Source of the DNA: Klebsormidium nitens
Taxonomy: Eukaryota > Plantae > Klebsormidiophyceae
Assembly: GCA_000708835.1 (NCBI GenBank)
Contig: DF237334.1
Coordinates: forward strand, 25,316 to 89,315
Length of the DNA: 64,000 nt
Direction: 5' to 3'
Shown: piece after piece, positions 1 through 64,000 of the stretch
Layout: the number at the start of each line of letters is the position of its first letter
Numbering within the stretch: the first letter of the stretch is position 1
Notes under the pieces: model-generated
Databases searched by the model: none
Seen by the model: only the letters and a program-made list of their open reading frames with translations
What the model was told of the DNA's origin: nothing
Program-made: the position numbers and the translations under genes

Positions 1-1076
1 GCGGTGCAAGGATCGCCAGCTGGAGGTGTTGGGGAAAATCAGAGAAGGAGCGAGATCCCCCAGCCATACGTTTCAGGGCGGGGGGAACGTCCATTGGAGG
101 GAACAGGGTGGGAACTAGGGCCCTGAATATTGCTGCGCACAGGATCACAAGTCTTTGAAGCCAAGCTGTGAGAGCCTGTCTGCAGGTCTGAGATGTTGTG
201 AGCGATGCTTGCATGAGTGTGGCCTGCTCAGGCCAGGTGTGTTCACATCTGGCACAGTCAAGCTGTGTTTACAAGCGGGCCGGAAAATGCTGGTCATGCA
301 GTCCAGTGCTTTGCTTCTGCTAGGTTTCTGACCAACTGACAACGGGAAGGATTCGAGCTATGACTTGCTTGACCAACTCTGTTTCTTTCTGAAGGCCAAC
401 CCAGTCTGCAAGTTGCACCACTTCAATTGTCTCAGCCGGATCAAGAGTGCAGAAGCCTGAACAAAGACGCCATAAAAGTGCTTGACCTTTCCGTTCGTCA
501 CCTTCTGACGCCAATGTCACTGAAGCGCCGCAGTACTATTGGGGCGCTCAGCAGCAAAGACCCACTGGACGATAAAACGTTCTTCTCGCTATCACATGCT
601 GATCAACTTGTGCATGGGGGTTGCGCATAAATTGGGGGATCCCGTTCAATGTCCTCCCGGTCTTCACTATCATCCGGGCCGCCTGAGCCGTTCGATGGAG
701 GCTGTACAGTCCTCAAGGCCGTAGATTTGGCAGAAACCTTGGCATCGCAGTGAAACCTGTGAGGAGCGCTTAAAAAGTTGTAGTGTTAAAGCATTCTTGG
801 AAGGTACGTCACGTGTTGATAAATAGGTCTTTCTGGCCGCTTCTAATCTCAGCGTGGCGTCAGGGTTGACACCATCCTGTCAAAAGGCACCATCAGCTGT
901 GCGAAGAATGTATCACTGACTGAGGCGCGCTTGTTGAATGGGTGCACTTCAAAACGGTTCCTGAACTCAGGCAGCGAAGGGTTCCAATCACTGCTACGGT
1001 ATCTCTCTCAAGAAGTGCGATCGGGTCAGCAAGTGCCCTCACTGTTCAGCAGGCTGAGCCTTATTCTATTGGCGTC

Positions 1077-4000
1077 ATGGCTGCGCCGCCCCATGTCGCT
1101 GGACTCTTCATCTATCCTGTCAAGTCGTGCCGAGGCATTGCCCTGCAGAGGGCCCACATCACAGAGTATGGTGAGCAACAGATGGGGATCACTCTTTCTC
1201 TCTTTTCAAATACCTCCGATGGCATTCTTTCGGGCAGCTACAGTTGTTGAGTTGAATCTAGAGTGAAAGTGTAACCCGTGTTGCTTGGCACTTGCATCTG
1301 TTAATTGGGACACTGTTTGATTGCTTGGGGTTATTTGTTGCTAGCTTTTAATGAATTCCCGTTGAGCACACTGAAGAGGGCATGATTGTGTAAAGCTGGT
1401 CGGCAGCCGGTGTCAGAAAGCCACCGCTCCCTTTCCCCTCGCGGCGGAGCTCAACCATCTGTTTCTCACAACTTGCCTTCAGCTCCAACAGGAAGCGCTC
1501 CCATCGTTGCATGACTGCCCGGCCAGAGAGCACCCACTTATGCCCACTTCTGTACGTTTAAATTCATCACACTGGACAAGACAAACAGTCAGAGTTCCGC
1601 CCCCGCATCTACAGTTTCGCTCTCAACTGGTGGTGGATGTTAGACAATTACGAGGGCGGCTTGCTGACTCTCATTTCTAAGTGACCTTTCCCCCAAGCAC
1701 CCACGCCCTTCCTGAACATGCAATGCTCAAATTTTCAGACACACACATAGACACACAAACAGTCGGACTTCTGCTCCGGCGTCTGCAGGCTTTGCTTTGA
1801 CCGGTTGTCGATGATCGTCAAAGACAAGGGCCGGTTGCTGACTGTCACTGTCAAGTGACCCTTCCGCGAAAGCTCCCACACCTTCCTGAACATGCATTGC
1901 TCTGTCCTAAGAGACAAAACCAGTTAACTTCTGCTCCGGCGTCTGCAGGCTTTGCTTTTGACCGCTGGTGGATGGTCGTCAATGACAAGGGCCGCATGCT
2001 GACGCAGCGCCAGGCGCCCAAGCTGGCTCTCGTGGAGACGGCCCTTCCCCCAGAGGCTATCGAGGAGGGGGCCTGGAAGCCGCTGCCCCCCGACGCCGCA
2101 CTCAGTAAGAAAACCTCTTTCACTGCTTTTTCTTTCTTCATCACTTTGGTCTGTTTTTAACATCTCTATTCTGTGAACCAAGCCCACACTTGGTGAGGAA
2201 ACCTCGCTTATCTTTTCGTGTCTTGTCTCCTTTGATTTCTACTTCTTGTTTCTATCCTGCCGCTAGACGCCGCACGCTGTGACAAGACCTTCCGTTTGCA
2301 ATGCCGTTTTGTCATTCATTTCCTGTTTCCTTCGTTTTCCTTTGTGAGAAAAATGCGTAAGTGCACTCAGGACTGCAGATTGGCACAAGCGACGACGCAT
2401 TTGCATAGAACCCATAATGCAATTAGAGGGTCATGATTGGAACAAAATTGCCCCCTTACAGAGTGGCTGTAACCGACCGCTAGCAAATTTCCACTTGGTG
2501 CTTCTCCTTGTGACAAGCTGCTCCCGTTGCTCTCCACAGGCCTGAAAGCCCCTGGAATGGGACCCCTCCAAATCTCCCTCGCCACGCTTAACAGTGGGGG
2601 TGGCTTCTTATCCCGGGTGTTTGGAACCTCAACCCTGCCGAGGTTAGTGGAAGCCTCAGTGTGGGAGTGGGCGGGGCAGGCACTAGACGAGGGGGACGAC
2701 GCAGCGGCGTGGTTCTCCGACTACCTCGACCGGCCGTGCAGGCTGGTGCGATTTGCGCCAGGTGCGTGGCTTTTCTGACGAGCTTTTGCGTTTCCCAAGA
2801 CATGATCGAACAATCATGTCCCCTTATAAAGCTCGGAACTTTGGATTGTTTGTAAGTCTTGTAGGATATGAGAAACGGAAGGTTGTCGAGAGGCATTGAG
2901 CCGCGCAAAGGCTTCCAGTTTTGACATTCTTGCAGTCTTCCAGGCCCCTGTCTTTTGTAAATGGCGAAGTGGTCGCTTCCTTCCTTGACCTTAGACGCGC
3001 TCTGCTGACGAAACACGTTAGATATCTGAACGTTGTTGTGAATGGAAGAAAAGTAAACACTTTGTCTTCGCCAAAATACGAACGCCTTCTTGACTACATA
3101 AGCACTCACGTCTCCAACGTTTTTCAATATACGAAGAAGAATGGAGCGGGATCAGCAATTTCAGGAGCCTGAGCTTGCCGGTCGACCAGACTCGTGGGTG
3201 TTCACAGATTGTGTGTCAAGCCAGATTGTTTTTCTAGCTTTGACACTTTCGTACGATTGTGCACATACTAGACTTTCTTCGAACTCGCTGCTTGTCGTGA
3301 AGATTCCTTTTACCGTATCCTCTAAAAACCGCTCAATCAGCTCAGGTTTTGAGAAAACCGTACGCCACAGGATACGAGTTACTGGAATCTGCAATCTCTT
3401 TTTGCACCGTACTGTAAGTGCCTTCGTTGTGAAGACATCAGAGTCAGTCACTCTGCTTTGTTGCAGATGTGAACAAGAGGGACGTCGATCCAACTTATGC
3501 AAGTGGCTATACCACCCAGTTCACGGACGGGTTCCCATACCTGGTAGCATCGGAGGTGAGCCCACAATGCAACGCCTGCGAAAGCAGAAAAGACTGTTTC
3601 GATTGCAGCCGAAATCCAACTTCGAGAAATGCATGAATGTTGAATCATGCTCACAAAAGCTAGAACAGGGAGACCGGACGACTTCGAAGATCAGCGGCTA
3701 CAAGTTCACCTCATTGCATCTGTCATCTAGAAGTAAGAAAGCGAAGCCTTCAGAAAGTGGCGCCCTTGTCTCGAAGAGAAGTTGCCAGCCGGAGCGCGAA
3801 TTAGAAGGGCGCAGAAGGCCGTTTTATCCTTTTTCTGATCAAGAAGCGACTGACTCCATGTGAACGTTTTTCTCAAAGTTGCTCGAATCCACATCAGGAA
3901 GTACTTCCGCGCAAACCCCAGATTCTGCTCTCCGCTGGCGAATGATTAGTACACACGATCCAGTTTGACCTGCCGGTTCTGGTGGGCGTACAGCCAGCAT

Positions 4001-6676
4001 CACACCGAAACGAGAAGCTAGAAGAGGGCATCATTTGTGCGATTCCCACCTCTTCGTCAGGTTTCGTTGCCACCGCCTCACTTTGCGTCATGGTGCTGTG
4101 CAGCCATCGCTCGCCGCTTTGAACGCAAGTCTGGAACAACCGCTGCCCATGAACCGCTTTCGACCAAAGTGAGTCCGCTCTCAGAAACACTCATTTTTTG
4201 AATTTGGGCTTTTTACTGAACACCGAGACGGACACATCCGAAGCCTTGAGCGGTGATCGCTCCTTTGCTTTGCGATCTGGTGTGCCTGTACGGTTGTCTC
4301 GGGGCATTTGCCCCTCACTTAAAAACGGTGGTCCAGCTTTTCTGTGTTCGAAACGTGTCCCGGGCATCGGTGGCGCTTACTCGTTCGGCCTTCTAAAAAC
4401 GCGTATTCGGGCTTGAACGGAAGGAGGGAGAACATGGACTCCCGAGCCGATGTTATAGACCCCTCTTAGCCATAACTTTCTAGGATCGACGGTCTAGGAT
4501 GAGTGTATGTACTAAGTGCGACCGTCGATCGAAGGGGTTATAGTCGGAAGGGGGTAACGTAGGGAGTCCGTCGGGAGTCCCTGTCCGCCTTCCATCCGTT
4601 CTGACAGCACTCGAGCAGTCGGCTCGGTCGAGCTGCCTCACCTTGAAGCAAGAAAATGATGTTCCTAGAAACTGATGCGGATTTCCTCATTAGTCACCAA
4701 TTTCTTCGCCTGCGGCTCACGTTCGTTTTTGATTATCCGTGATGTTGCCTGAGTATCGTAGCCGCTCCACTGTTGTACCACCCCTCTCGCTACGATCCTT
4801 TCTTCAGCATCGTGGTGGACGGTTGCCAGCCGTTCGATGAGGACACGTGGGCGACGGTGAGCGTCCGGAGCCCGGGGGGAGGGACCGGGGTCACGTTCCG
4901 GGGCGTCAAGCCGTGCAGCCGGTGCAAGGTGACCACCACCGACCAGGCCACCGCAGAAGTCGGCAAGGAGCCGCTAGTGGTGAGCTAGGGTTCGCTGTTC
5001 CACCGGTTTGTTTTCTTTTGTTTTGTTCTGTTTCGTTTTGTTGCGATTTGTTCGCTGTTCCATCGGATTTGTTTCTCATGTTTAGTTCGTTTCCTTTTGC
5101 TCCGTTTTGCTTTTGTACTGTTTTGTTTCCACCAACCCGTCAAAGGCGTCGTGTCCGGCCATTTTGTCCGGGGTCGTCAGAAAGGAGCCTTCCACACAAT
5201 CGGACGCGGCGGCGAACGAATTTCTAATCTTTCAGAAGGCAACTTTGATCTTGCTGTCGCTGCTGCCCCTGGGTTTCCTCGCTCTCGGGTGGATTCCAAC
5301 GAGTTCCGCGCTTTTCGTTTCCCTTTCTTTCTCTCTCCTGTTTCCTTATTCTTACCTGATCTGGCGCTCCACTTGGGTGCGATTTGGTTATGATCTGTTT
5401 TGCCCTCGTATTATGTAAATGGACCTCGTGCCCTTCTCGTAGGAGTTCACCTGTAAAGCGTGGGAGGAACTCTCCTTGTTGTGTTTGCATCCGGTTCTCC
5501 TCTCATATCTGTGTGCTTTTTCCAGGTCAATCATCTTCTTCGTGAGCGCTCACCCCGGTTTCAGTGCTTCGCGTCTTGGTCTGTTTGCAGTCGGCCGAGA
5601 GCATTGTGTCGTTATATCTGCTTTTTAGAAATTGCGGTATCACGCTACGTGTTCTTTACCTGTACCGAACACGGTTCAAACCCATTGCCTTTGGAATTCC
5701 GATAGAAGATAGAGACTCCGGGTGCCGGGAGTGCTTCGAGCATGCTCTTCGTATCCTGAAATCGCGCAATTCGATTGAAGCGCTGCCAACACAAACCATC
5801 ATTCTTTCTTCCTCGTAATTTGTCCACCCTCGCTTCTTGTTCAATACTCCCTCGCGGCAAGGCGGGGGAAGTTTCTTGTCTGAAAATCTGTGCAGAAGAC
5901 ATCCTCATCCTTAACGAAATCTCATGCCTGAAATTTGCATTGGTTGGCCTTTACGTAAAGACAATAGTACCCGTCTCCAGCAGCCAGTTCGTCGCTTTGC
6001 GAGTTTGAAGTCCTGTAACCCAAGCCTTCGGAAACAGCTGGACACAGGAGCAGTCCAGGTGGTCTCGGCGCTCGCTCTGCTGACGAGCTTGCAGCATATG
6101 CTTTTTCTCGGCCGGGGCGTTCGCACAACCGCTGCTAAACCTTTTTTCTTCCGGGGCTCTTCTCTCCGCAGACTTTGGGAAAGATTCGGCACGGAAAGCA
6201 GTTGGAGCTTCCTCGACCGTTACAAGGAGGCGTAAGTCACCGAATTACTGCATGCTCCTCCTCAGATTCCTTTTGACGCTTTTTTGACTTTCCTCATGTT
6301 CAAGCTCCATGAGTGTGCAAGTCGTTTCGTTCCCTTCGCATGGTCAGGGAAAATGAAGAAGCGCACAGCTTACAAACGCTGCATCCCGGCCGGGTTTTGC
6401 TTTTGAATTATGCTACTCACTGCGGTGCTTCCTCGATCCTACAGAATGTTTGATCAGCCCTTGTTTTCTGTAGACAAAAGTAAAAACCGCCCGTCACAAT
6501 CTGAAAAGCACCTTTGTGAATACCAGGTTTACTTTGGGATGAACATGGTCGCCGATGCACTTACTTCCGGGCAAAGCAGCGCCACTGTCGGCGTTGGCGA
6601 CGTGGCGGAAGTAGTGACTCAGCTCCCAGTGGGCGTGCACATGGCCCAAATCCATTCAGCGGCGGCAGCTAGCTAG
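1077..6676 (+). CDS. MOSC-domain protein (mARC / molybdenum cofactor sulfurase C-terminal family), 8 exons, about 335 aa
   Basis: Exons 1077-1170, 1949-2104, 2540-2761, 3467-3555, 4104-4168, 4808-4979, 6172-6231, 6527-6676. All introns are GT-AG with compatible phases; total 1008 nt. Motifs: LFIYPVKSCRGI, FDRWWMVV, FTDGFPYL, LPMNRFRPNIVVDGCQPFDEDTW, KPCSRCKVTT (Mo-ligand Cys region), VYFGMN. Confidence 0.93.
1575..2020 (+). repeat. Three tandem 160-175 bp copies of the intron-1 acceptor plus 5' half of MOSC exon 2 (two decayed, one functional)
   Basis: AG acceptors at 1613-1614, 1787-1788 and 1947-1948. Copy B cttctgctccggcgtctgcaggctttgctttgaccgg versus functional cttctgctccggcgtctgcaggctttgcttttgaccgc. 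Confidence 0.9.
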
Positions 6677-8666
6677 AGCCAGCTCTGGTAGGCCCGTAAT
6701 GGCTTTCGTCTCAGATTATTCTGTTCGTGCACATATGTAATTATAGCTTGAGTCTTGACGAAGATACCAAGGACAGCTTTGTATTGTTCGTACATATCCA
6801 GGTGTTGAAACCGCTCGCCGTAAGCAGCGCCAGAAGTTGCTTCCTAGGTCTACATGTTGACTTTCTTCAAGCGGGACAGGGAATGTGGGATTGCGCCATG
6901 GCTAGTCAGTTTGCATATGTAGGATATGTGCACCCTGATTGCAAGTATGCTAGAAAGCTAGTACGATTCAACTCTCCAAGGAGATTATTGTGTAGATATA
7001 TGGACAATACGATCACCGTCCGGGGTCCGAGCATATATTTGCCATCGTTAGATTGTGTGTGAACTGGATATTGAACTGGTGGCCCTTGCCATTACGAGGA
7101 TGTGAAGGATCACGCCTACATGCAACGAACGGGTAAGTCGACACCGGCGGCACATATGAAATTGTGTGGTTGTCGAGTTCTCTTCTCAGAAATTTTGGTG
7201 CGTGCAAGAGCAAGTTAAGAATTGTACGTGCGTTCGTACGCTTGAAGTACGAAATGACTGGGGTCTTAGCCGGGCGAACGATTCGGAACAATCAAGTGCA
7301 CGTACGTTCGCAATTACCTCGATCCTGTACGGCAACTCAAGTGTTCCTTTCGTTGGAACAAAACCCAAACTAGTTGCATGACTGTTGGCATACATATCTG
7401 CACAATGACTAGTTCCAAATTCGATGATGTTTAATCGTACCCGGCCCTTTGACCCTTCAAGTCTGAGTAAGTCTCAACAACTTGGGCCGCTATAAGTTAG
7501 ATTATATAGTCCACATTCGTGCAATTCAACCGCGAAGACCGCAAGAGAAACGAGCGGGGGGGCCTCGGGGGGGCGGCAGCCCCTTGATATATTAGGTGCA
7601 AAAGCTGTCGATCAACTGCACACGAGAGAAGGAAGCAACATGTGGAACTTGTCAAAGACAACTTCAAGCACTCGCTTCGTACTCCCTCCTGGGAGCACTG
7701 CCGCTGTAACACCGAGTTCGCTTGGCGAACACCAATTTTATAAGAAAATGGTCATTATTCCACCGGTGTAGTAGGGACTAGGTAGGTAGGTATCCTACGG
7801 ATAAGTCCTACACCTAACTTATCAGAAGTACCTAGGCAGGTACCAAGATTCGTCATCTTGAGCTGTCATGACAGCTCATCCTCACGGTGCCAGTACCTAT
7901 TGCCTACCTAGTGACTCGGATCGGCTAGAGGCTATAAATGTACCTGCTGGAGTCTGGAGGCGACTGTTCGAACAGTACCGGTACACCGGTAGGTACCTAC
8001 CTAGATGAATGCACAGATTCCTGTTACCTGTACCTATACACTGCAGCAGACGCTGACGTGACGGAATCAGACGGCGGATACGACACGAAGGATATACGTA
8101 CGGCAGATTGCATACCTCGCATTTCAACCGGTACATAACACACGCAATGATTTGCTGTCGTACCGACTTCCTTGTACCTACTGGAAACAGAAACACCCGT
8201 GGGCCGTACACCGGTACGCACCCTAAGAGGTACCTACCGTAGGTACTAGGTACGTAGGACTTTGGCAACTCTCGTGTGACCAAAGTGTGACCCAACCACC
8301 TAACCACCTTACCGCCTCCCGGTTCGACCCCACCCGTCTCCCGGGCGCCTATCTACGGTATGCCTAGCTGCCAGAATTGAGTCGACGCTCGTAACCCGGC
8401 TCGGGGTCCCGGCCGCCGTCCTCGTCGCCATGGGGTCGGCCAACCCAGCCTCAGAGGTTTTTGCATGAGGAAACAATTTTAAGAATGGTACCTATTGAAC
8501 TTTGAAGCTATGGCCCGCCGACAAGTCGTTGACAAAAGTTCCATGCGCCGTCGGTACCAATTTTGTGGTGCGGGGTATCGTACCCTGGAGGTACTTGGTC
8601 GAGAAGTCTGACGCCCATGTTCTCTGTCAGGCACGGGTGACGGAAGAGGCAAGTACTAAGGTCTAA

Positions 8667-58973: not shown

Positions 58974-59329
58974 NNNNNNNNNNNNNNNNNNNNNNNNNNN
59001 NNNNNNNNNNNNNNNNNNNNNNNNNNNNNNNNNNNNNNNNNNNNNNNNNNNNNNNNNNNNNNNNNNNNNNNNNNNNNNNNNNNNNNNNNNNNNNNNNNNN
59101 NNNNNNNNNNNNNNNNNNNNNNNNNNNNNNNNNNNNNNNNNNNNNNNNNNNNNNNNNNNNNNNNNNNNNNNNNNNNNNNNNNNNNNNNNNNNNNNNNNNN
59201 NNNNNNNNNNNNNNNNNNNNNNNNNNNNNNNNNNNNNNNNNNNNNNNNNNNNNNNNNNNNNNNNNNNNNNNNNNNNNNNNNNNNNNNNNNNNNNNNNNNN
59301 NNNNNNNNNNNNNNNNNNNNNNNNNNNNN
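58974..59329. other. Scaffold gap (356 N)
   Basis: Run of N separating the zinc-knuckle gene from the retroelement. Confidence 0.99.
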
Positions 59330-59680: not shown

Positions 59681-60691
59681 ATGCTCGCGAGGATCGTGCA
59701 TGGGAGAATGCAAATTTCAACTAGAAACTTCGATCGGAATGTCTTCGCGAACTTGCCAGGCCAAGGTGTCCCTCCTGTGAATCCATTTGCTTTCTGGAAC
59801 AATCTCTTCAATGCACAGGCTCCTCAGCAGGCTGCTTTCCCTGGTGTCTTTGGAAATGCTTTTGCGCAACAGGCTCCTCAGGCTCAACATGCACCCCAGG
59901 CTCAACATGCACCTCAAGCGCAACAGGAAGCTCATCAAGTTCCGCCTCAGCAGGCTCCTCTTCAGCAAGACGCCCTGCAGCCAGGCAATCCCCTGAATGA
60001 CATGTTCAATGTCTTCACATCTGTTGTTCGTGACCTGAAGTCTGAGCTCAGCAGCATCAAGGACAAGATCGAGGACTCTGTGCATGACGCCATTTCTGGA
60101 AGCTTCGAGCACAAGAAGAGGAAGGCGGACAAGTTCAAGAACGAAGCCGCCAAGAAGAACTACATCCCCCTCGAAGAGACGCACATCCGCTTCTCTGCTG
60201 TGAAGGAGACTGTCTCGGAGGCCAAGGAGTCTAGGATTGGCATGGCGCCTGAGCAGCTGGAGAAGATGGACGAGATCCTTGACGAAGGTTTGTCTATTCT
60301 TCAGGATCGCATGCGTTTCTATGAGGTTGCAGAGGCTGAGACCTGGGATGTTGCCAAGAAGATTGATGAGCATGATTTCATTCTCGACCTTCCTGAAGAT
60401 GTGAAGTCCAAGCTCAAGCGCGCCAAGAAGGAGGTCAAGGCTGAGACCAAGGACAAGTCTGCGCTGAAGAAGAAGAGCTCTTTTGGTTTCCGCAAGTTCC
60501 GCAGCAAGAAGGGTGGTTTCCAGAAGGGTTTTCAAGGTGGTTTCCAGCAGGGTGGTTTCCAGCAGCATGGTCAGGGTGGAGGTCTGCGTGGTCCATGCTT
60601 CTCTTGCGGCCAGTATGGCCATCTCAATGCAGAGTGTCCGAATAAGGCAGCACAGGTTTTGCAGGCAGGCAGAGTAAATGCAGGACACTGA
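59681..60691 (+). CDS. Gag-like ORF1 (336 aa) of the YR retrotransposon
   Basis: Q/A/P-rich repeats (QAPQAQHAPQAQHAPQAQ), helical charged core, GGFQ repeats, and C-terminal zinc knuckle CFSCGQYGHLNAEC. The exact start codon is uncertain. Confidence 0.85.
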   Translation: MLARIVHGRMQISTRNFDRNVFANLPGQGVPPVNPFAFWNNLFNAQAPQQAAFPGVFGNAFAQQAPQAQHAPQAQHAPQAQQEAHQVPPQQAPLQQDALQPGNPLNDMFNVFTSVVRDLKSELSSIKDKIEDSVHDAISGSFEHKKRKADKFKNEAAKKNYIPLEETHIRFSAVKETVSEAKESRIGMAPEQLEKMDEILDEGLSILQDRMRFYEVAEAETWDVAKKIDEHDFILDLPEDVKSKLKRAKKEVKAETKDKSALKKKSSFGFRKFRSKKGGFQKGFQGGFQQGGFQQHGQGGGLRGPCFSCGQYGHLNAECPNKAAQVLQAGRVNAGH

Positions 60692-60905
60692 CATTTTCTG
60701 TAAGGAACATGCGCAGGAGCGCTTTCAGCTTGCGAGCTGCCTGGTCCTATAAACCAGAGAGGAACTCATTGTTCCTTTGGTTCGGGTGAACCTTTGCCTT
60801 TGCGATAAGGCCTGTTCCTTTGTCACATCTCTGCAGTTGATGCTATCGTTGTGTTGTACTTTCCTCCATGCATTCCTGGTGTTCCACTTTGTCCACCTTT
60901 TTTGA

Positions 60906-63900
60906 AGGTCTTTTGAATTCTCAGCATATCCACTGCTTATTCCTGTTCTCTTTCCTGCAGCTGAGTTGGAGTCTTTACACCTGCTGGCTGACCTCACTGA
61001 GGCAGCCGAATTTGAAGGTTTTCGTCGTGCTGCCAAGCCTTCTTCTTCGACCTCCTCTGGCCAACCTTCTGCTCCCAAGTCTGAACCCTGGCTTCGCAAC
61101 CGCCTACGTCAGCACATCGCTTTCTGGCGCACTTTTTGTACTTCTGCCTTCATTCTCAGCATCCTCACGTCTGGCTATCAGCTCCCCTGGTCCGCAAACC
61201 CTCCGGTTGGCCCGAGGCTCTTCTCGAATTACCCTTCTGCCTTCGAGTATCCTGAGTATCCTGCTGTCGCCTCTCTTGTTGCTTCTGGAGCAGCTCTTCA
61301 GGTCCAGAATAGGCCTTTCATTGTGAGTCCTCTTGGCGTCGTCCCCAAAGCTGTAGACAAACTCCGCCTGATCTTAGATCTTCGCTATGTTAACAGCTTT
61401 CTGCGCGTGGATAAATTCAAGTATGAATCAATTCGCGAAGTCAGCTCACTTTGCAAGCTTAGGGACTATCTCTTCAGCGTTGATATTAAATCAGGCTACC
61501 ATCACGTGGATATCCATCAGGATTTCTGGCAATTTCTTGGTTTTGAGTGGGAAGGACAGTACTATGTCTTCTGCCAGCTTCCGTTCGGCTTAGCAACCGC
61601 CTGTTTTGTTTTCACAAAGCTTATCAAACAGCTAGTGCAGCGTTGGCGCAGCTTAGGTATTCGCTGCATTCCCTACATAGATGACTTTCTCTTCATTCCA
61701 AGCTCTGCAGCTGAATTTGCTCAGGTTAAAGCTCAGGTCTTAGGCGACTTCGCTCAGGCAGGTTTCGTTCTCTCTACTGAGAAGTGTCAGCTTCAGCTTA
61801 GCCACGTGGTGAAGTTTTTAGGGTTTGTGATTGATATGCTCAGTGGCGTCTTCCGCTTGACTGCTCTTCAGAAGACCAAGCTTCAGGATGCTATCTCCTC
61901 CGCGCGCTCTTCACCTCAGCGTGTCCCTGCTAAGCTGCTCGCTCGTATCACTGGCCTTCTCGCGTCTATGAAGCTGGTCACCGGCTCAGTCTCTGGCCTG
62001 TTTACTCGCTACCTGCATCGAGCTCTGAACACCCGCTCTTCCTGGCGCTCGACTGTTTCCCTAGACGCTGCTGCTCTCTCCAAGCTTTCCTTCTGGACCT
62101 CATCTCTTGACCAATTCTCTGCGCGCCCTATTTGGCGGCAATTCTCCCTCGTCCTAGTTCTCCAGTATGACGCGGGTGCGAACGGCTGGGGAGGACACGT
62201 GGTCATCAGCGGTCAGCAGCATTTTGCTCATGGTGCTTGGGCTCCGGACGAGGTCCACGGCTGCCGTTCTTCGACGTGGCGCGAGCTCCAAGGTCTTCAC
62301 CGTCTTCTGCGTTCTGTTGGTCATCTTCTTCGCGGGCATCGGGTGATCGCGCGCGGTGACGCTCAGAACGTGTTCTGGATTCTCGACAGGGGTGGCTCTC
62401 GGCTAGAGCATCTTCAGGAAATCTGCCTCGACATTTTCTGGCTGTGCCATAGTCTTCACATCGACCTGACTCCGGACTGGGTTCCTCGCGCCCAGAATGA
62501 ACTTGCTGACTACTTGTCGAAGCTTGTCGATTACGACGACTTTGGTCTTCAGCCTGCGGCTTTCTCTCATTTGCTTCAGCAGCTAGGCCCTTTCGACATA
62601 GACTGCTTCGCTAGCGAGCATAACGCCTTGCTCCCCGCTTTCTTCTCAGAGCTTTGGACGCCGCGCGCGCACGCGGCGAACGCTTTCGCTCAACCCTGGT
62701 CAGGTTTTCGCTGCTATTGCTTCCCGCCGCCCAAGCTCATTCCCCGCGTACTCCAGCACGCTTTAGAGTCTTGCACCGACATTGTTTTGGTCGTCCTGGA
62801 TTGGCCCGGTCAGTTCTGGTGGCCACTCCTGCGTTCCGGTTCCGGTTGGGCTCCGTTTGTCCGGCGTTCCGTCCGCTTTCCTATGGGACCGGCTACGCTC
62901 CGTCGCGGTTCCGCTACTTCCTTCTTCGGCCACGGCTTTCCCCTCTGCGACGTTTTCGCTCTGGACATCCCCGTTTCCGGTAAGATATTCCGTTCCGTTC
63001 TGATTCTTTTCTTCTCTTCTGCAGACGTCTTCGGTCAGCACGCTTGGTCTCTCGAAGACGCTGGCCTTCCGGCCGATGATCCTGTTCTCTCGACTCTCCT
63101 GTCCGAACTGCGCGCGCGCGCGTCACAATCTCGCGCGGAGGGCACAGTTTCGACGTACAGCGGCCATTGGAAACGTTTCAAAACTTTCTGCCAAGCCCGG
63201 GGTGTTCCTTTTCTTCCTGCCTCTCCGCTGACGGTCGCCCTCTACTTCACGTTTTTGCTGCGCTCTGCCAAGACTCCGAGTCCTATCCTTTCGTGTTCTG
63301 GCGCCATCTTCTTTCATCATTCGATTGCGGGTCTTCCCTCTCCCACTCAGCATCCGATGGTCGCGATGGCGCGCCAGATTGCGCGCCGCACTCTCACCAA
63401 GGGCAAGAATCAGAAAACTGAGCCGCTCCTGGCGTCCCACATCTTCCAGCTTTTTGACACGTGGCTCCTGTCTCCCGGCGCTGACCTGGTCTCGGCAATG
63501 AAGCTGGCTGCTATCTCTCTGTGCTACGCTGGTTTCTTCCGTTTTTCCGATCTTATGACCGTTCAGTGGCAGGAGATTCGCTTTGAGTCTTCGCATATGG
63601 AGTGCTTCTTGGAGAAATCCAAGACGGATCAATTTCGCGAGGGCCGCTGGGTCCTGATTTCCCGGGTGGGAGGCGAAAGATGCATCGTTCAGTTGGTTGA
63701 ACGTCTGATCCACTTTGGCGGCTATGCCTCTGTCGGGCCGGGTGGCCTTATCCGCAACATTGTCTCTACTCCTGTTGGACAGCGGGTCTGCAGCAGCGTC
63801 CCCTGCTACAGCACGGTGAACGCGTGGTTCAAGGAGGCCGCCCAGCTTCTCGGCCTGGATCCTGACCAGTACGCCACGCACTCGGGGCGCCGCGGGGGCG

Positions 63901-64000
63901 CGACGCGCGCGGCGAACGTCGACGTTCCTGACCGTCTGTTCAAGGAGCACGGTGGCTGGCGCTCCGAGCGCGCGAAGGACGGCTATGTGGTGACGCGCCT
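60906..64000 (+). CDS. Single ORF of more than 1030 codons: reverse transcriptase, RNase H, Dam-like methyltransferase and tyrosine recombinase (3' incomplete)
   Basis: I translated it codon by codon and found no stop from 60906 to the edge (it is absent from the ORF track, presumably because no stop is reached). RT: SPLGVVPK..KLRLILDLRYVN, VDIKSGYHH, LPFGLATA, YIDD, KFLG. RH: YDAGANGWGG, WRELQG, RGDAQNV, NELADYLSK. MT: IDCFASEHN, YCFPPP. YR: AGFFRFSDL, KSKTDQFREG, HSGRRGGAT, HGGWRSE, DGY (Tyr codon 63984-63986). Confidence 0.92.

Follow-up and report, generated by a model that had tools for sequence, protein, structure and literature searches.

Elements of the DIRS order are described as having three open reading frames (ORFs), often overlapping, and the descriptions make no mention of splicing (PMC3266345, PMC9210276, PMC4157794). 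Within the order, split direct repeats together with a methyltransferase (MT) domain define the PAT-like group (PMC3266345, PMC4157794, PMC6681497). PAT-like elements such as Pat1 of Panagrellus, SpPat1, TOC3 of Chlamydomonas and kangaroo of Volvox carry gag, a reverse transcriptase (RT)-RNase H (RH)-MT frame and a tyrosine recombinase (YR) on one strand, with no protease or DDE integrase. Green algal members of the group have been listed without further detail (PMC8226300). DIRS1-like elements such as DIRS-1 of Dictyostelium share the RT-RH-MT pol and the Cre-like YR, but they have inverted terminal repeats with an internal complementary region, and their YR ORF overlaps pol (PMC3266345). Here we analyzed a 64,000-nt stretch (the window) of Klebsormidium nitens scaffold DF237334.1 (89,315 bp; assembly GCA_000708835.1), which ends in an element with the PAT-like gene set: gag, RT-RH-MT and YR on one strand, and neither a protease nor a DDE integrase. 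In contrast to the described PAT-like elements, its pol and YR lack start codons, follow conserved splice acceptor-like sequences, and are separated by a putative mini-intron.

Splicing-based expression is well known in retroviruses and in some long terminal repeat (LTR) elements, copia among them. The donor for avian leukosis virus env lies inside gag, so that the downstream protein starts with gag codons, and Ogre has an intron within its coding region. Splicing-based expression has also been reported for the LTR elements BARE (PMC3735527) and Cer1 (PMC10309623). Our literature search, whose coverage did not extend to the key reviews, returned no account of splicing in DIRS-order elements and none of YR elements in K. 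nitens. The comparisons below suggest that the window holds the 5' four-fifths of a PAT-like element of the DIRS order in which pol and YR are probably expressed as exons, and that the continuous MT-YR frame of this copy is probably read-through of a mini-intron.

A six-frame scan found a single stretch of 1031 stop-free codons, at 60906-63998 on the forward strand, that reaches the last full codon of the window and contains no methionine ahead of residue ~310. The sequence-only reading had described one stop-free frame with an RT bearing YIDD, an RNase H, a Dam-like MT region and a full YR catalytic set, assigned it to the DIRS order, and noted the lack of a protease. Pfam searches and an alignment to Cre recombinase bear out this description: the RT-RH-MT-YR domains were found in that order, and neither protease nor DDE integrase families (RVP, rve) gave a match in the Pfam search of the frame. 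When the frame was compared with the K. nitens relative P0003, similarity was continuous save for ~40 residues between MT and YR. At this junction the DNA reads ...TCC G^GTAAGATATTCCGTTCCGTTCTGATTCTTTTCTTCTCTTCTGCAG^AC GTC... (carets mark putative exon boundaries), a spacer of 45 nt with the marks of a spliceosomal intron: a consensus donor (GTAAGA, score 8.7), a CTGAT branch-like motif, a pyrimidine tract and a CAG acceptor. Its translation, GKIFRSVLILFFSSA, resembles no relative. A peptide containing GKIFRSVLILFF would belong to the retained spacer, and one reading ...LDIPVS-DVFGQ... to the spliced MT-YR junction. Because the spacer is pyrimidine-rich and a multiple of three in length (3n), an open MT-YR frame is no more than expected by chance; 91% of composition-preserving shuffles with fixed ends and 3n length were free of stops.

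The junction was then compared across 11 related elements: K. nitens scaffolds L002 (DF237379.1), L003 (DF237043.1), L007 (DF238374.1), L008 and L009, the ENA assembly contig L004, Logan contigs L006 and L011, and JGI contigs L005, L010 and L012. The window's pol is 53-70% identical to pol ORFs from K. nitens and other Klebsormidium-like sources, and a pol tree resolved two clades, with the window, L005, L006, L004/L007 and P0008 (locus L012) in clade I and L002, L003, L008 and L009 in clade II. L011 (66.7% identity) was outside the tree and was placed in clade I by similarity only. Homologous spacers in the relatives are 37-67 nt long, the length in L010 being undefined, and 10 of the 11 relatives, including two young families, carry a stop or frame change in the spacer or directly before it (Table 1). 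The eleventh, L010, is open but decayed. The earlier reading had proposed that the fusion of MT and YR in one frame might be shared by the whole lineage, and had named interruptions at this junction in other copies as the finding that would count against it; the 10 interrupted relatives do count against that proposal. The GT donor at the end of MT is kept in 11 of 12 loci, with scores from 5.3 to 10.4, and is missing only from the decayed L010.

The clearest view of how the spacer evolves comes from L004 and L007, which are 98-99% identical and differ by one T in the spacer, altering the frame relation of MT and YR. Since this difference is tolerated, and since the protein is conserved up to the donor and again from the acceptor onward, the spacer appears to evolve without frame constraint, and by this comparison it is non-coding in the family. 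No contiguous MT-YR ORF of this group was found among the ORF-called proteins of a 5.8-billion-cluster database; MT and YR occurred together just in K. nitens gene models, which are spliced predictions. Read-through from MT into YR as a general mechanism was rejected, since it would meet two stops in L002 and L005 and a frame change in L003, L006 and L007. As a separate observation, four of the five in-phase mini-introns of clade I are multiples of three (45, 42, 42 and 39 nt), and in-frame stops interrupt three of those four, in two cases within the branch-like motif (CTGAT, CTAAA). In this very small sample, the stops may act as a safeguard against translation of a retained intron.

Both pol and YR begin at conserved acceptor-like sequences. 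In the window, CTGCTTATTCCTGTTCTCTTTCCTGCAG^CT GAG directly precedes the first conserved pol residues, and GCAG^ lies 11 nt before the (E/D)S(L/I/M)H motif of pol in all 11 loci that contain the region. The sequence upstream of this acceptor is pyrimidine-rich and unconserved, with TACTAAC in L006, and seven of the nine loci tabulated have no in-frame methionine upstream of the pol motif. Among the K. nitens gene models, P0001, P0003 and P0010 splice to this acceptor. GCAG^ also recurs at the same codon and phase before YR in 11 of 12 loci, the exception being L009, and the first methionine of YR comes only 74-114 residues past the acceptor; intact relatives have 355-359 residues after it. Both acceptors are in phase 1, with the G of CAG opening a codon, and the preceding alanine codon is invariably GCA, which suggests a constraint on nucleotides rather than on the amino acid. 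Two to three stops per frame separate the gag stop codon (60689-60691) from position 60959, and a gag-to-pol frameshift or read-through was rejected because each frame is closed this way within 60692-60959. The conserved phase-1 acceptors, the lack of an ATG, and the lack of any frame path from gag to pol together point to pol and YR being exons that are spliced to an ATG-bearing exon upstream.

The donor at the end of MT is in phase 1 in five of the six clade I families (window, L005, L006, L011 and L012). With a phase-1 acceptor before YR, removal of the mini-intron in these five families would join MT to YR in frame. The polyprotein suggested by the sequence-only reading is therefore retained in part: as a genomic one-frame fusion it appears peculiar to this copy, and as a product of splicing it is possible in five of six clade I families. 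In the L004/L007 family the donor is in phase 2 owing to a 2-nt difference, so that unspliced RNA ends at TAA and spliced RNA at a newly formed TGA, and in three of four clade II families a stop precedes the donor. An MT-YR fusion protein could thus arise in the window's clade but is probably dispensable, because the young L004/L007 family, with 100% identical terminal repeats and ORFs intact in two assemblies, cannot make it. A message joining the gag exon to the YR exon would serve all families. The spacer is retained in 12 of 12 loci, and the sequence before pol in all 11 loci that include the start of pol, consistent with an unspliced template RNA.

Homologous gag ORFs precede pol in L002, L004, L005, L006, L011 and L012, and a candidate upstream donor lies within a gag motif, L-D-E/Q-G. 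The codons of this motif read (G/C)AA G^GT in eight of nine families and GAA G^GCAAG in L005. Since AAG^GT is kept at the same codon, and GGT makes up just 38% of glycine codons in these elements, 60287^60288 is a fair candidate. Further phase-1 GT dinucleotides occur in the glycine-rich tail of gag (60537 and 60570), where the K. nitens gene models place their donors, at a different one in each copy.

Table 1. Features of the window element, and spacers between MT and YR in its relatives. Carets mark putative exon boundaries.
Feature	Position or length	Strand	Basis or state
gag-like ORF, 336 aa	59681..60691	+	ORF list, translation; coiled-coil-like middle, Gly-rich tail
Candidate phase-1 5' splice site, GAAG^GTTTGT	60285..60293, GT at 60288	+	inferred from conserved gag motif L-D-E-G
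3' splice-site-like signal before pol	60925..60959	+	CTGCTTAT, pyrimidine tract, CTGCAG^CT; exon start 60960, phase 1
Putative pol exon	60960..62979	+	RT, RNase H, DIRS-type MT-like; Pfam, motif coordinates, relatives
RT	61344-61832; YIDD 61674-61685	+	Pfam RVT_1 aa 147-309, E 6e-18, above cutoff
RNase H	about 62163-62522	+	RVT_3 aa 450-539, E 0.018, sub-threshold
DIRS-type MT-like region	about 62559-62975	+	FDIDCFA ... FPPP; Dam aa 552-625, 20.7 bits (cutoff 28.1), sub-threshold
Intron-like spacer, window (clade I)	62980-63024, 45 nt	+	G^GTAAGA, CTGAT, pyrimidine tract, CTGCAG^AC; stop-free, 3n; open, same frame
Putative YR exon, Cre-like tyrosine recombinase	63025..63998	+	cut by scaffold end ~32 codons before expected stop
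YR catalytic residues	R 63534-63554; K 63612-63629; HxxR 63879-63896; W 63948-63965; Y 63978-63992	+	
Spacer, L005 (clade I)	8050-8091, 42 nt		two in-frame stops
Spacer, L011 (clade I by similarity)	~3596-3637, 42 nt		one stop
Spacer, L012 (clade I)	~3357-3395, 39 nt		one stop
Spacer, L006 (clade I)	37 nt		frame change plus stop
Spacer, L004 / L007 (clade I)	44 / 43 nt		TAA arises within GGTAAG
Spacer, L002, L003, L008 (clade II)	55-67 nt		stop codon just ahead of donor
Spacer, L009 (clade II)	64 nt		frame change; acceptor AG replaced by TG
Spacer, L010 (clade not placed)	undefined		open in frame, decayed copy, donor lost

These signals and phases suggest a scheme in which the beginning of gag, with the only start ATG, pol and YR would be three exons of one gene. 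Unspliced RNA would be translated into Gag and would also serve as template. A phase-1 donor within gag, perhaps 60287^60288, would be joined to the pol acceptor at 60959^60960 to make Gag'-Pol, and to the YR acceptor at 63024^63025 to make Gag'-YR. In the window's clade, removal of the mini-intron would extend Pol into YR in frame, giving RT-RH-MT-YR. The segment at 62980-63024 would then be a retained mini-intron that happens to be 3n and stop-free in this copy, rather than the mark of a lineage-wide gene fusion. The logic would resemble retroviral env and LTR-retrotransposon splicing, where unspliced RNA is both genome and gag message and spliced RNAs give the downstream proteins. Those elements differ in belonging to another order and in having a DDE integrase and LTRs, and for the window element the use of the splice signals and the choice of donor are read from sequence alone. 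We rate as about even the chances that Klebsormidium PAT-like elements splice one phase-1 gag donor alternatively to two phase-matched acceptors, so that a single transcript supplies Gag, Gag'-YR and Gag'-Pol, the last with YR attached or not. If so, they would be the first members of the DIRS order described as relying on splicing for expression.

The same frame could instead be a true genomic fusion, in which the 45 nt encode a linker and the element is expressed, under selection, as one RT-RH-MT-YR polyprotein made from unspliced RNA. In its favour, all 1031 codons are open, both flanks of the spacer are intact and conserved, and other members of the order have one-ORF layouts: TATE copies of Bodo saltans have RT and YR in one uninterrupted ORF (PMC6681497), and P0099 (ENA, 1351 aa, ORF-called) combines a C5-cytosine methylase with RT, RNase H and a tyrosine recombinase (DNMT-RT-RH-YR) in the same way. 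TATE (VIPER-like) and P0099, probably a dinoflagellate DIRS element with a C5-MT, are distant lineages with no sign of an intron-like spacer, and P0099 has weak similarity to the window frame (E 6e-11, 25% identity). P0099 is similar to the SymbioDIRS-Dnmt3 elements, whose YR has been reported as a separate ORF (PMC5890265). We consider a true fusion improbable, given that the spacer has full splice signals and a translation matched by no relative, that nearly all relatives are interrupted at the same point, that a pyrimidine-rich 3n spacer is expected to be open, and that the frame lacks a start codon and has a splice acceptor of its own before it. A little less improbable, though still unlikely, is that Pol and YR are always separate proteins. 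In that case YR would come solely from a message joining gag to YR without pol, the mini-intron would be too small for splicing by itself, and the open frame would have no consequence. This would suit the L004/L007 family, which looks active and yet gains a stop codon whether its spacer is removed or kept, as well as the stops ahead of the donor in L002, L003 and L008 and the ATG-less YR with its conserved phase-1 acceptor in all families. It leaves hard to explain why a donor that is never used should be kept at the end of MT in nearly every locus, and in phase with YR in most clade I families.

A decayed or mis-assembled copy, in which a collapsed or chimeric assembly at the scaffold end created a frame of no biological meaning, is very unlikely. 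The position at the scaffold end, a 356-N gap just upstream of gag, and the failure to find a second copy of the family in the databases searched speak for it; against it, all three coding parts are undamaged and no catalytic motif is missing, and a chimera would rarely keep 1031 codons open. Several points do weigh against our preferred reading, in which pol and YR are exons and the open junction is a retained mini-intron. At 37-45 nt, such introns would be unusually small for a streptophyte, and neither a spliced RNA nor an intron-less copy was seen: a degenerate junction pattern searched against JGI metagenome contigs returned three unrelated chance matches. The MT-end donor is out of phase or preceded by a stop in four families. 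Every GGT glycine codon creates a phase-1 GT, and the gene models pick different ones, so that the upstream donor at 60287^60288 is one candidate among several. Finally, word-index protein searches that took as query the entire frame, its MT-YR half or a junction piece of 161 aa returned no copy of the window's family above 70% identity except its own gene model, and with a single copy known the open spacer is a presumed one-off.

The element shows the traits of the DIRS order: RT and RNase H of the Ty3/gypsy-like type, a tyrosine recombinase, and an upstream gag-like ORF with a CCHC zinc knuckle (60596-60637), a feature that matches Pat1-like forms (PMC4157794). The terminal repeats were read in relatives. 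L007, a scaffold that consists of a single element (1-6743), has A1 (1-226) 100% identical to A2 (5870-6095) and B1 (5759-5869) 100% identical to B2 (6633-6743). The same split direct repeats, A1...B1A2-X-B2, occur in L004, L005, L007 and L008, and these complete relatives have no inverted repeats. On the basis of these repeats and the MT domain (PMC3266345, PMC4157794, PMC6681497), the family is PAT-like and not DIRS1-like, the assignment resting on the relatives because the window's own repeats lie beyond the scaffold end or, for A1, presumably in the N gap. The youth and possible activity that the sequence-only reading saw in the intact frame would show in such repeats and in further copies of the family. 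Ngaro and VIPER elements are set apart by the absence of an MT domain, and an MT-like region is present here. The unique stretch between A2 and B2, 537 nt in L007 and about 540-1240 nt across relatives (1.2 kb in L005), departs from the textbook B1A2B2 arrangement.

Domain assignments in the frame vary in strength (Table 1). The RNase H region has all four D/E/D/D motifs, at 62163-62516, and RNase H and Dam domains, sub-threshold in the window frame, are recorded for many relatives. PF05869 in many relatives covers the same region as the window's MT-like part, which has the shared motifs F-x-[VIL]-D-x-F-A and x-P-P-x; a comparison of the MT region with PDB sequences gave no meaningful match. 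Where Dam-type enzymes have (D/N)PPY, the window has FPPP (62721-62732) and its relatives VPPV, VPPI or CPPI, and so the region called MT may lack adenine methyltransferase activity. The recombinase matches Pfam Phage_integrase over aa 864-1022 (28.5 bits, cutoff 27.1), and the last 324 residues of the frame align to Cre over both domains, with R (FFRFSDL), K (EKSKTD), HxxR (HSGRRG) and W (HGGW) opposite Cre R173, K201, H289/R292 and W315. The alignment stops just before the tyrosine (DGY), which lies nine residues past W, presumably the same spacing as that of Cre Y324.

Gene model P0001, which covers the window element, stops at base 89,315, showing that the window ends with the scaffold. 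The window has 324 residues past the YR acceptor, against 355-359 in intact relatives, so that ~32 C-terminal residues are missing. One of two N runs in the window, at 58974-59329, is the gap mentioned above and sits at the expected place of the 5' repeat A1; together with a scaffold end inside YR, this suggests that the assembler broke on a repeated element. P0001 starts at an internal gag methionine and splices out frame residues 141-273, including the YIDD active site of RT (window 61326-61726; L001 11325-11726), and is an annotation artefact. The K. nitens gene models were rejected as evidence for introns, since those for L002 and L003 put the MT-YR donor inside conserved coding sequence and that for the window drops the RT core. 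Between 60500 and 64000 the coding strand is strongly richer in T than in A (AT skew -0.25 to -0.37), and the same interval has long spurious overlapping ORFs at 60868-61326 (+) and 63123-63950 (-). Non-coding parts of the sister elements L008 and L009 are rich in TTCCG/GTTCC short repeats.

Taken literally, a fused polyprotein gene in this element carries little weight by itself, and the comparison with relatives indicates that a retained 3n intron can make a eukaryotic transposon look as if it had an intact fused ORF. It also reveals that the K. nitens gene models treat these elements inconsistently. If the proposed scheme is true, it would account for the translation of pol and YR frames that have no AUG. 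For the translation of downstream frames in DIRS-order elements, which are often AUG-less or overlapping, retrovirus-like alternative splicing would provide a concrete and testable answer.

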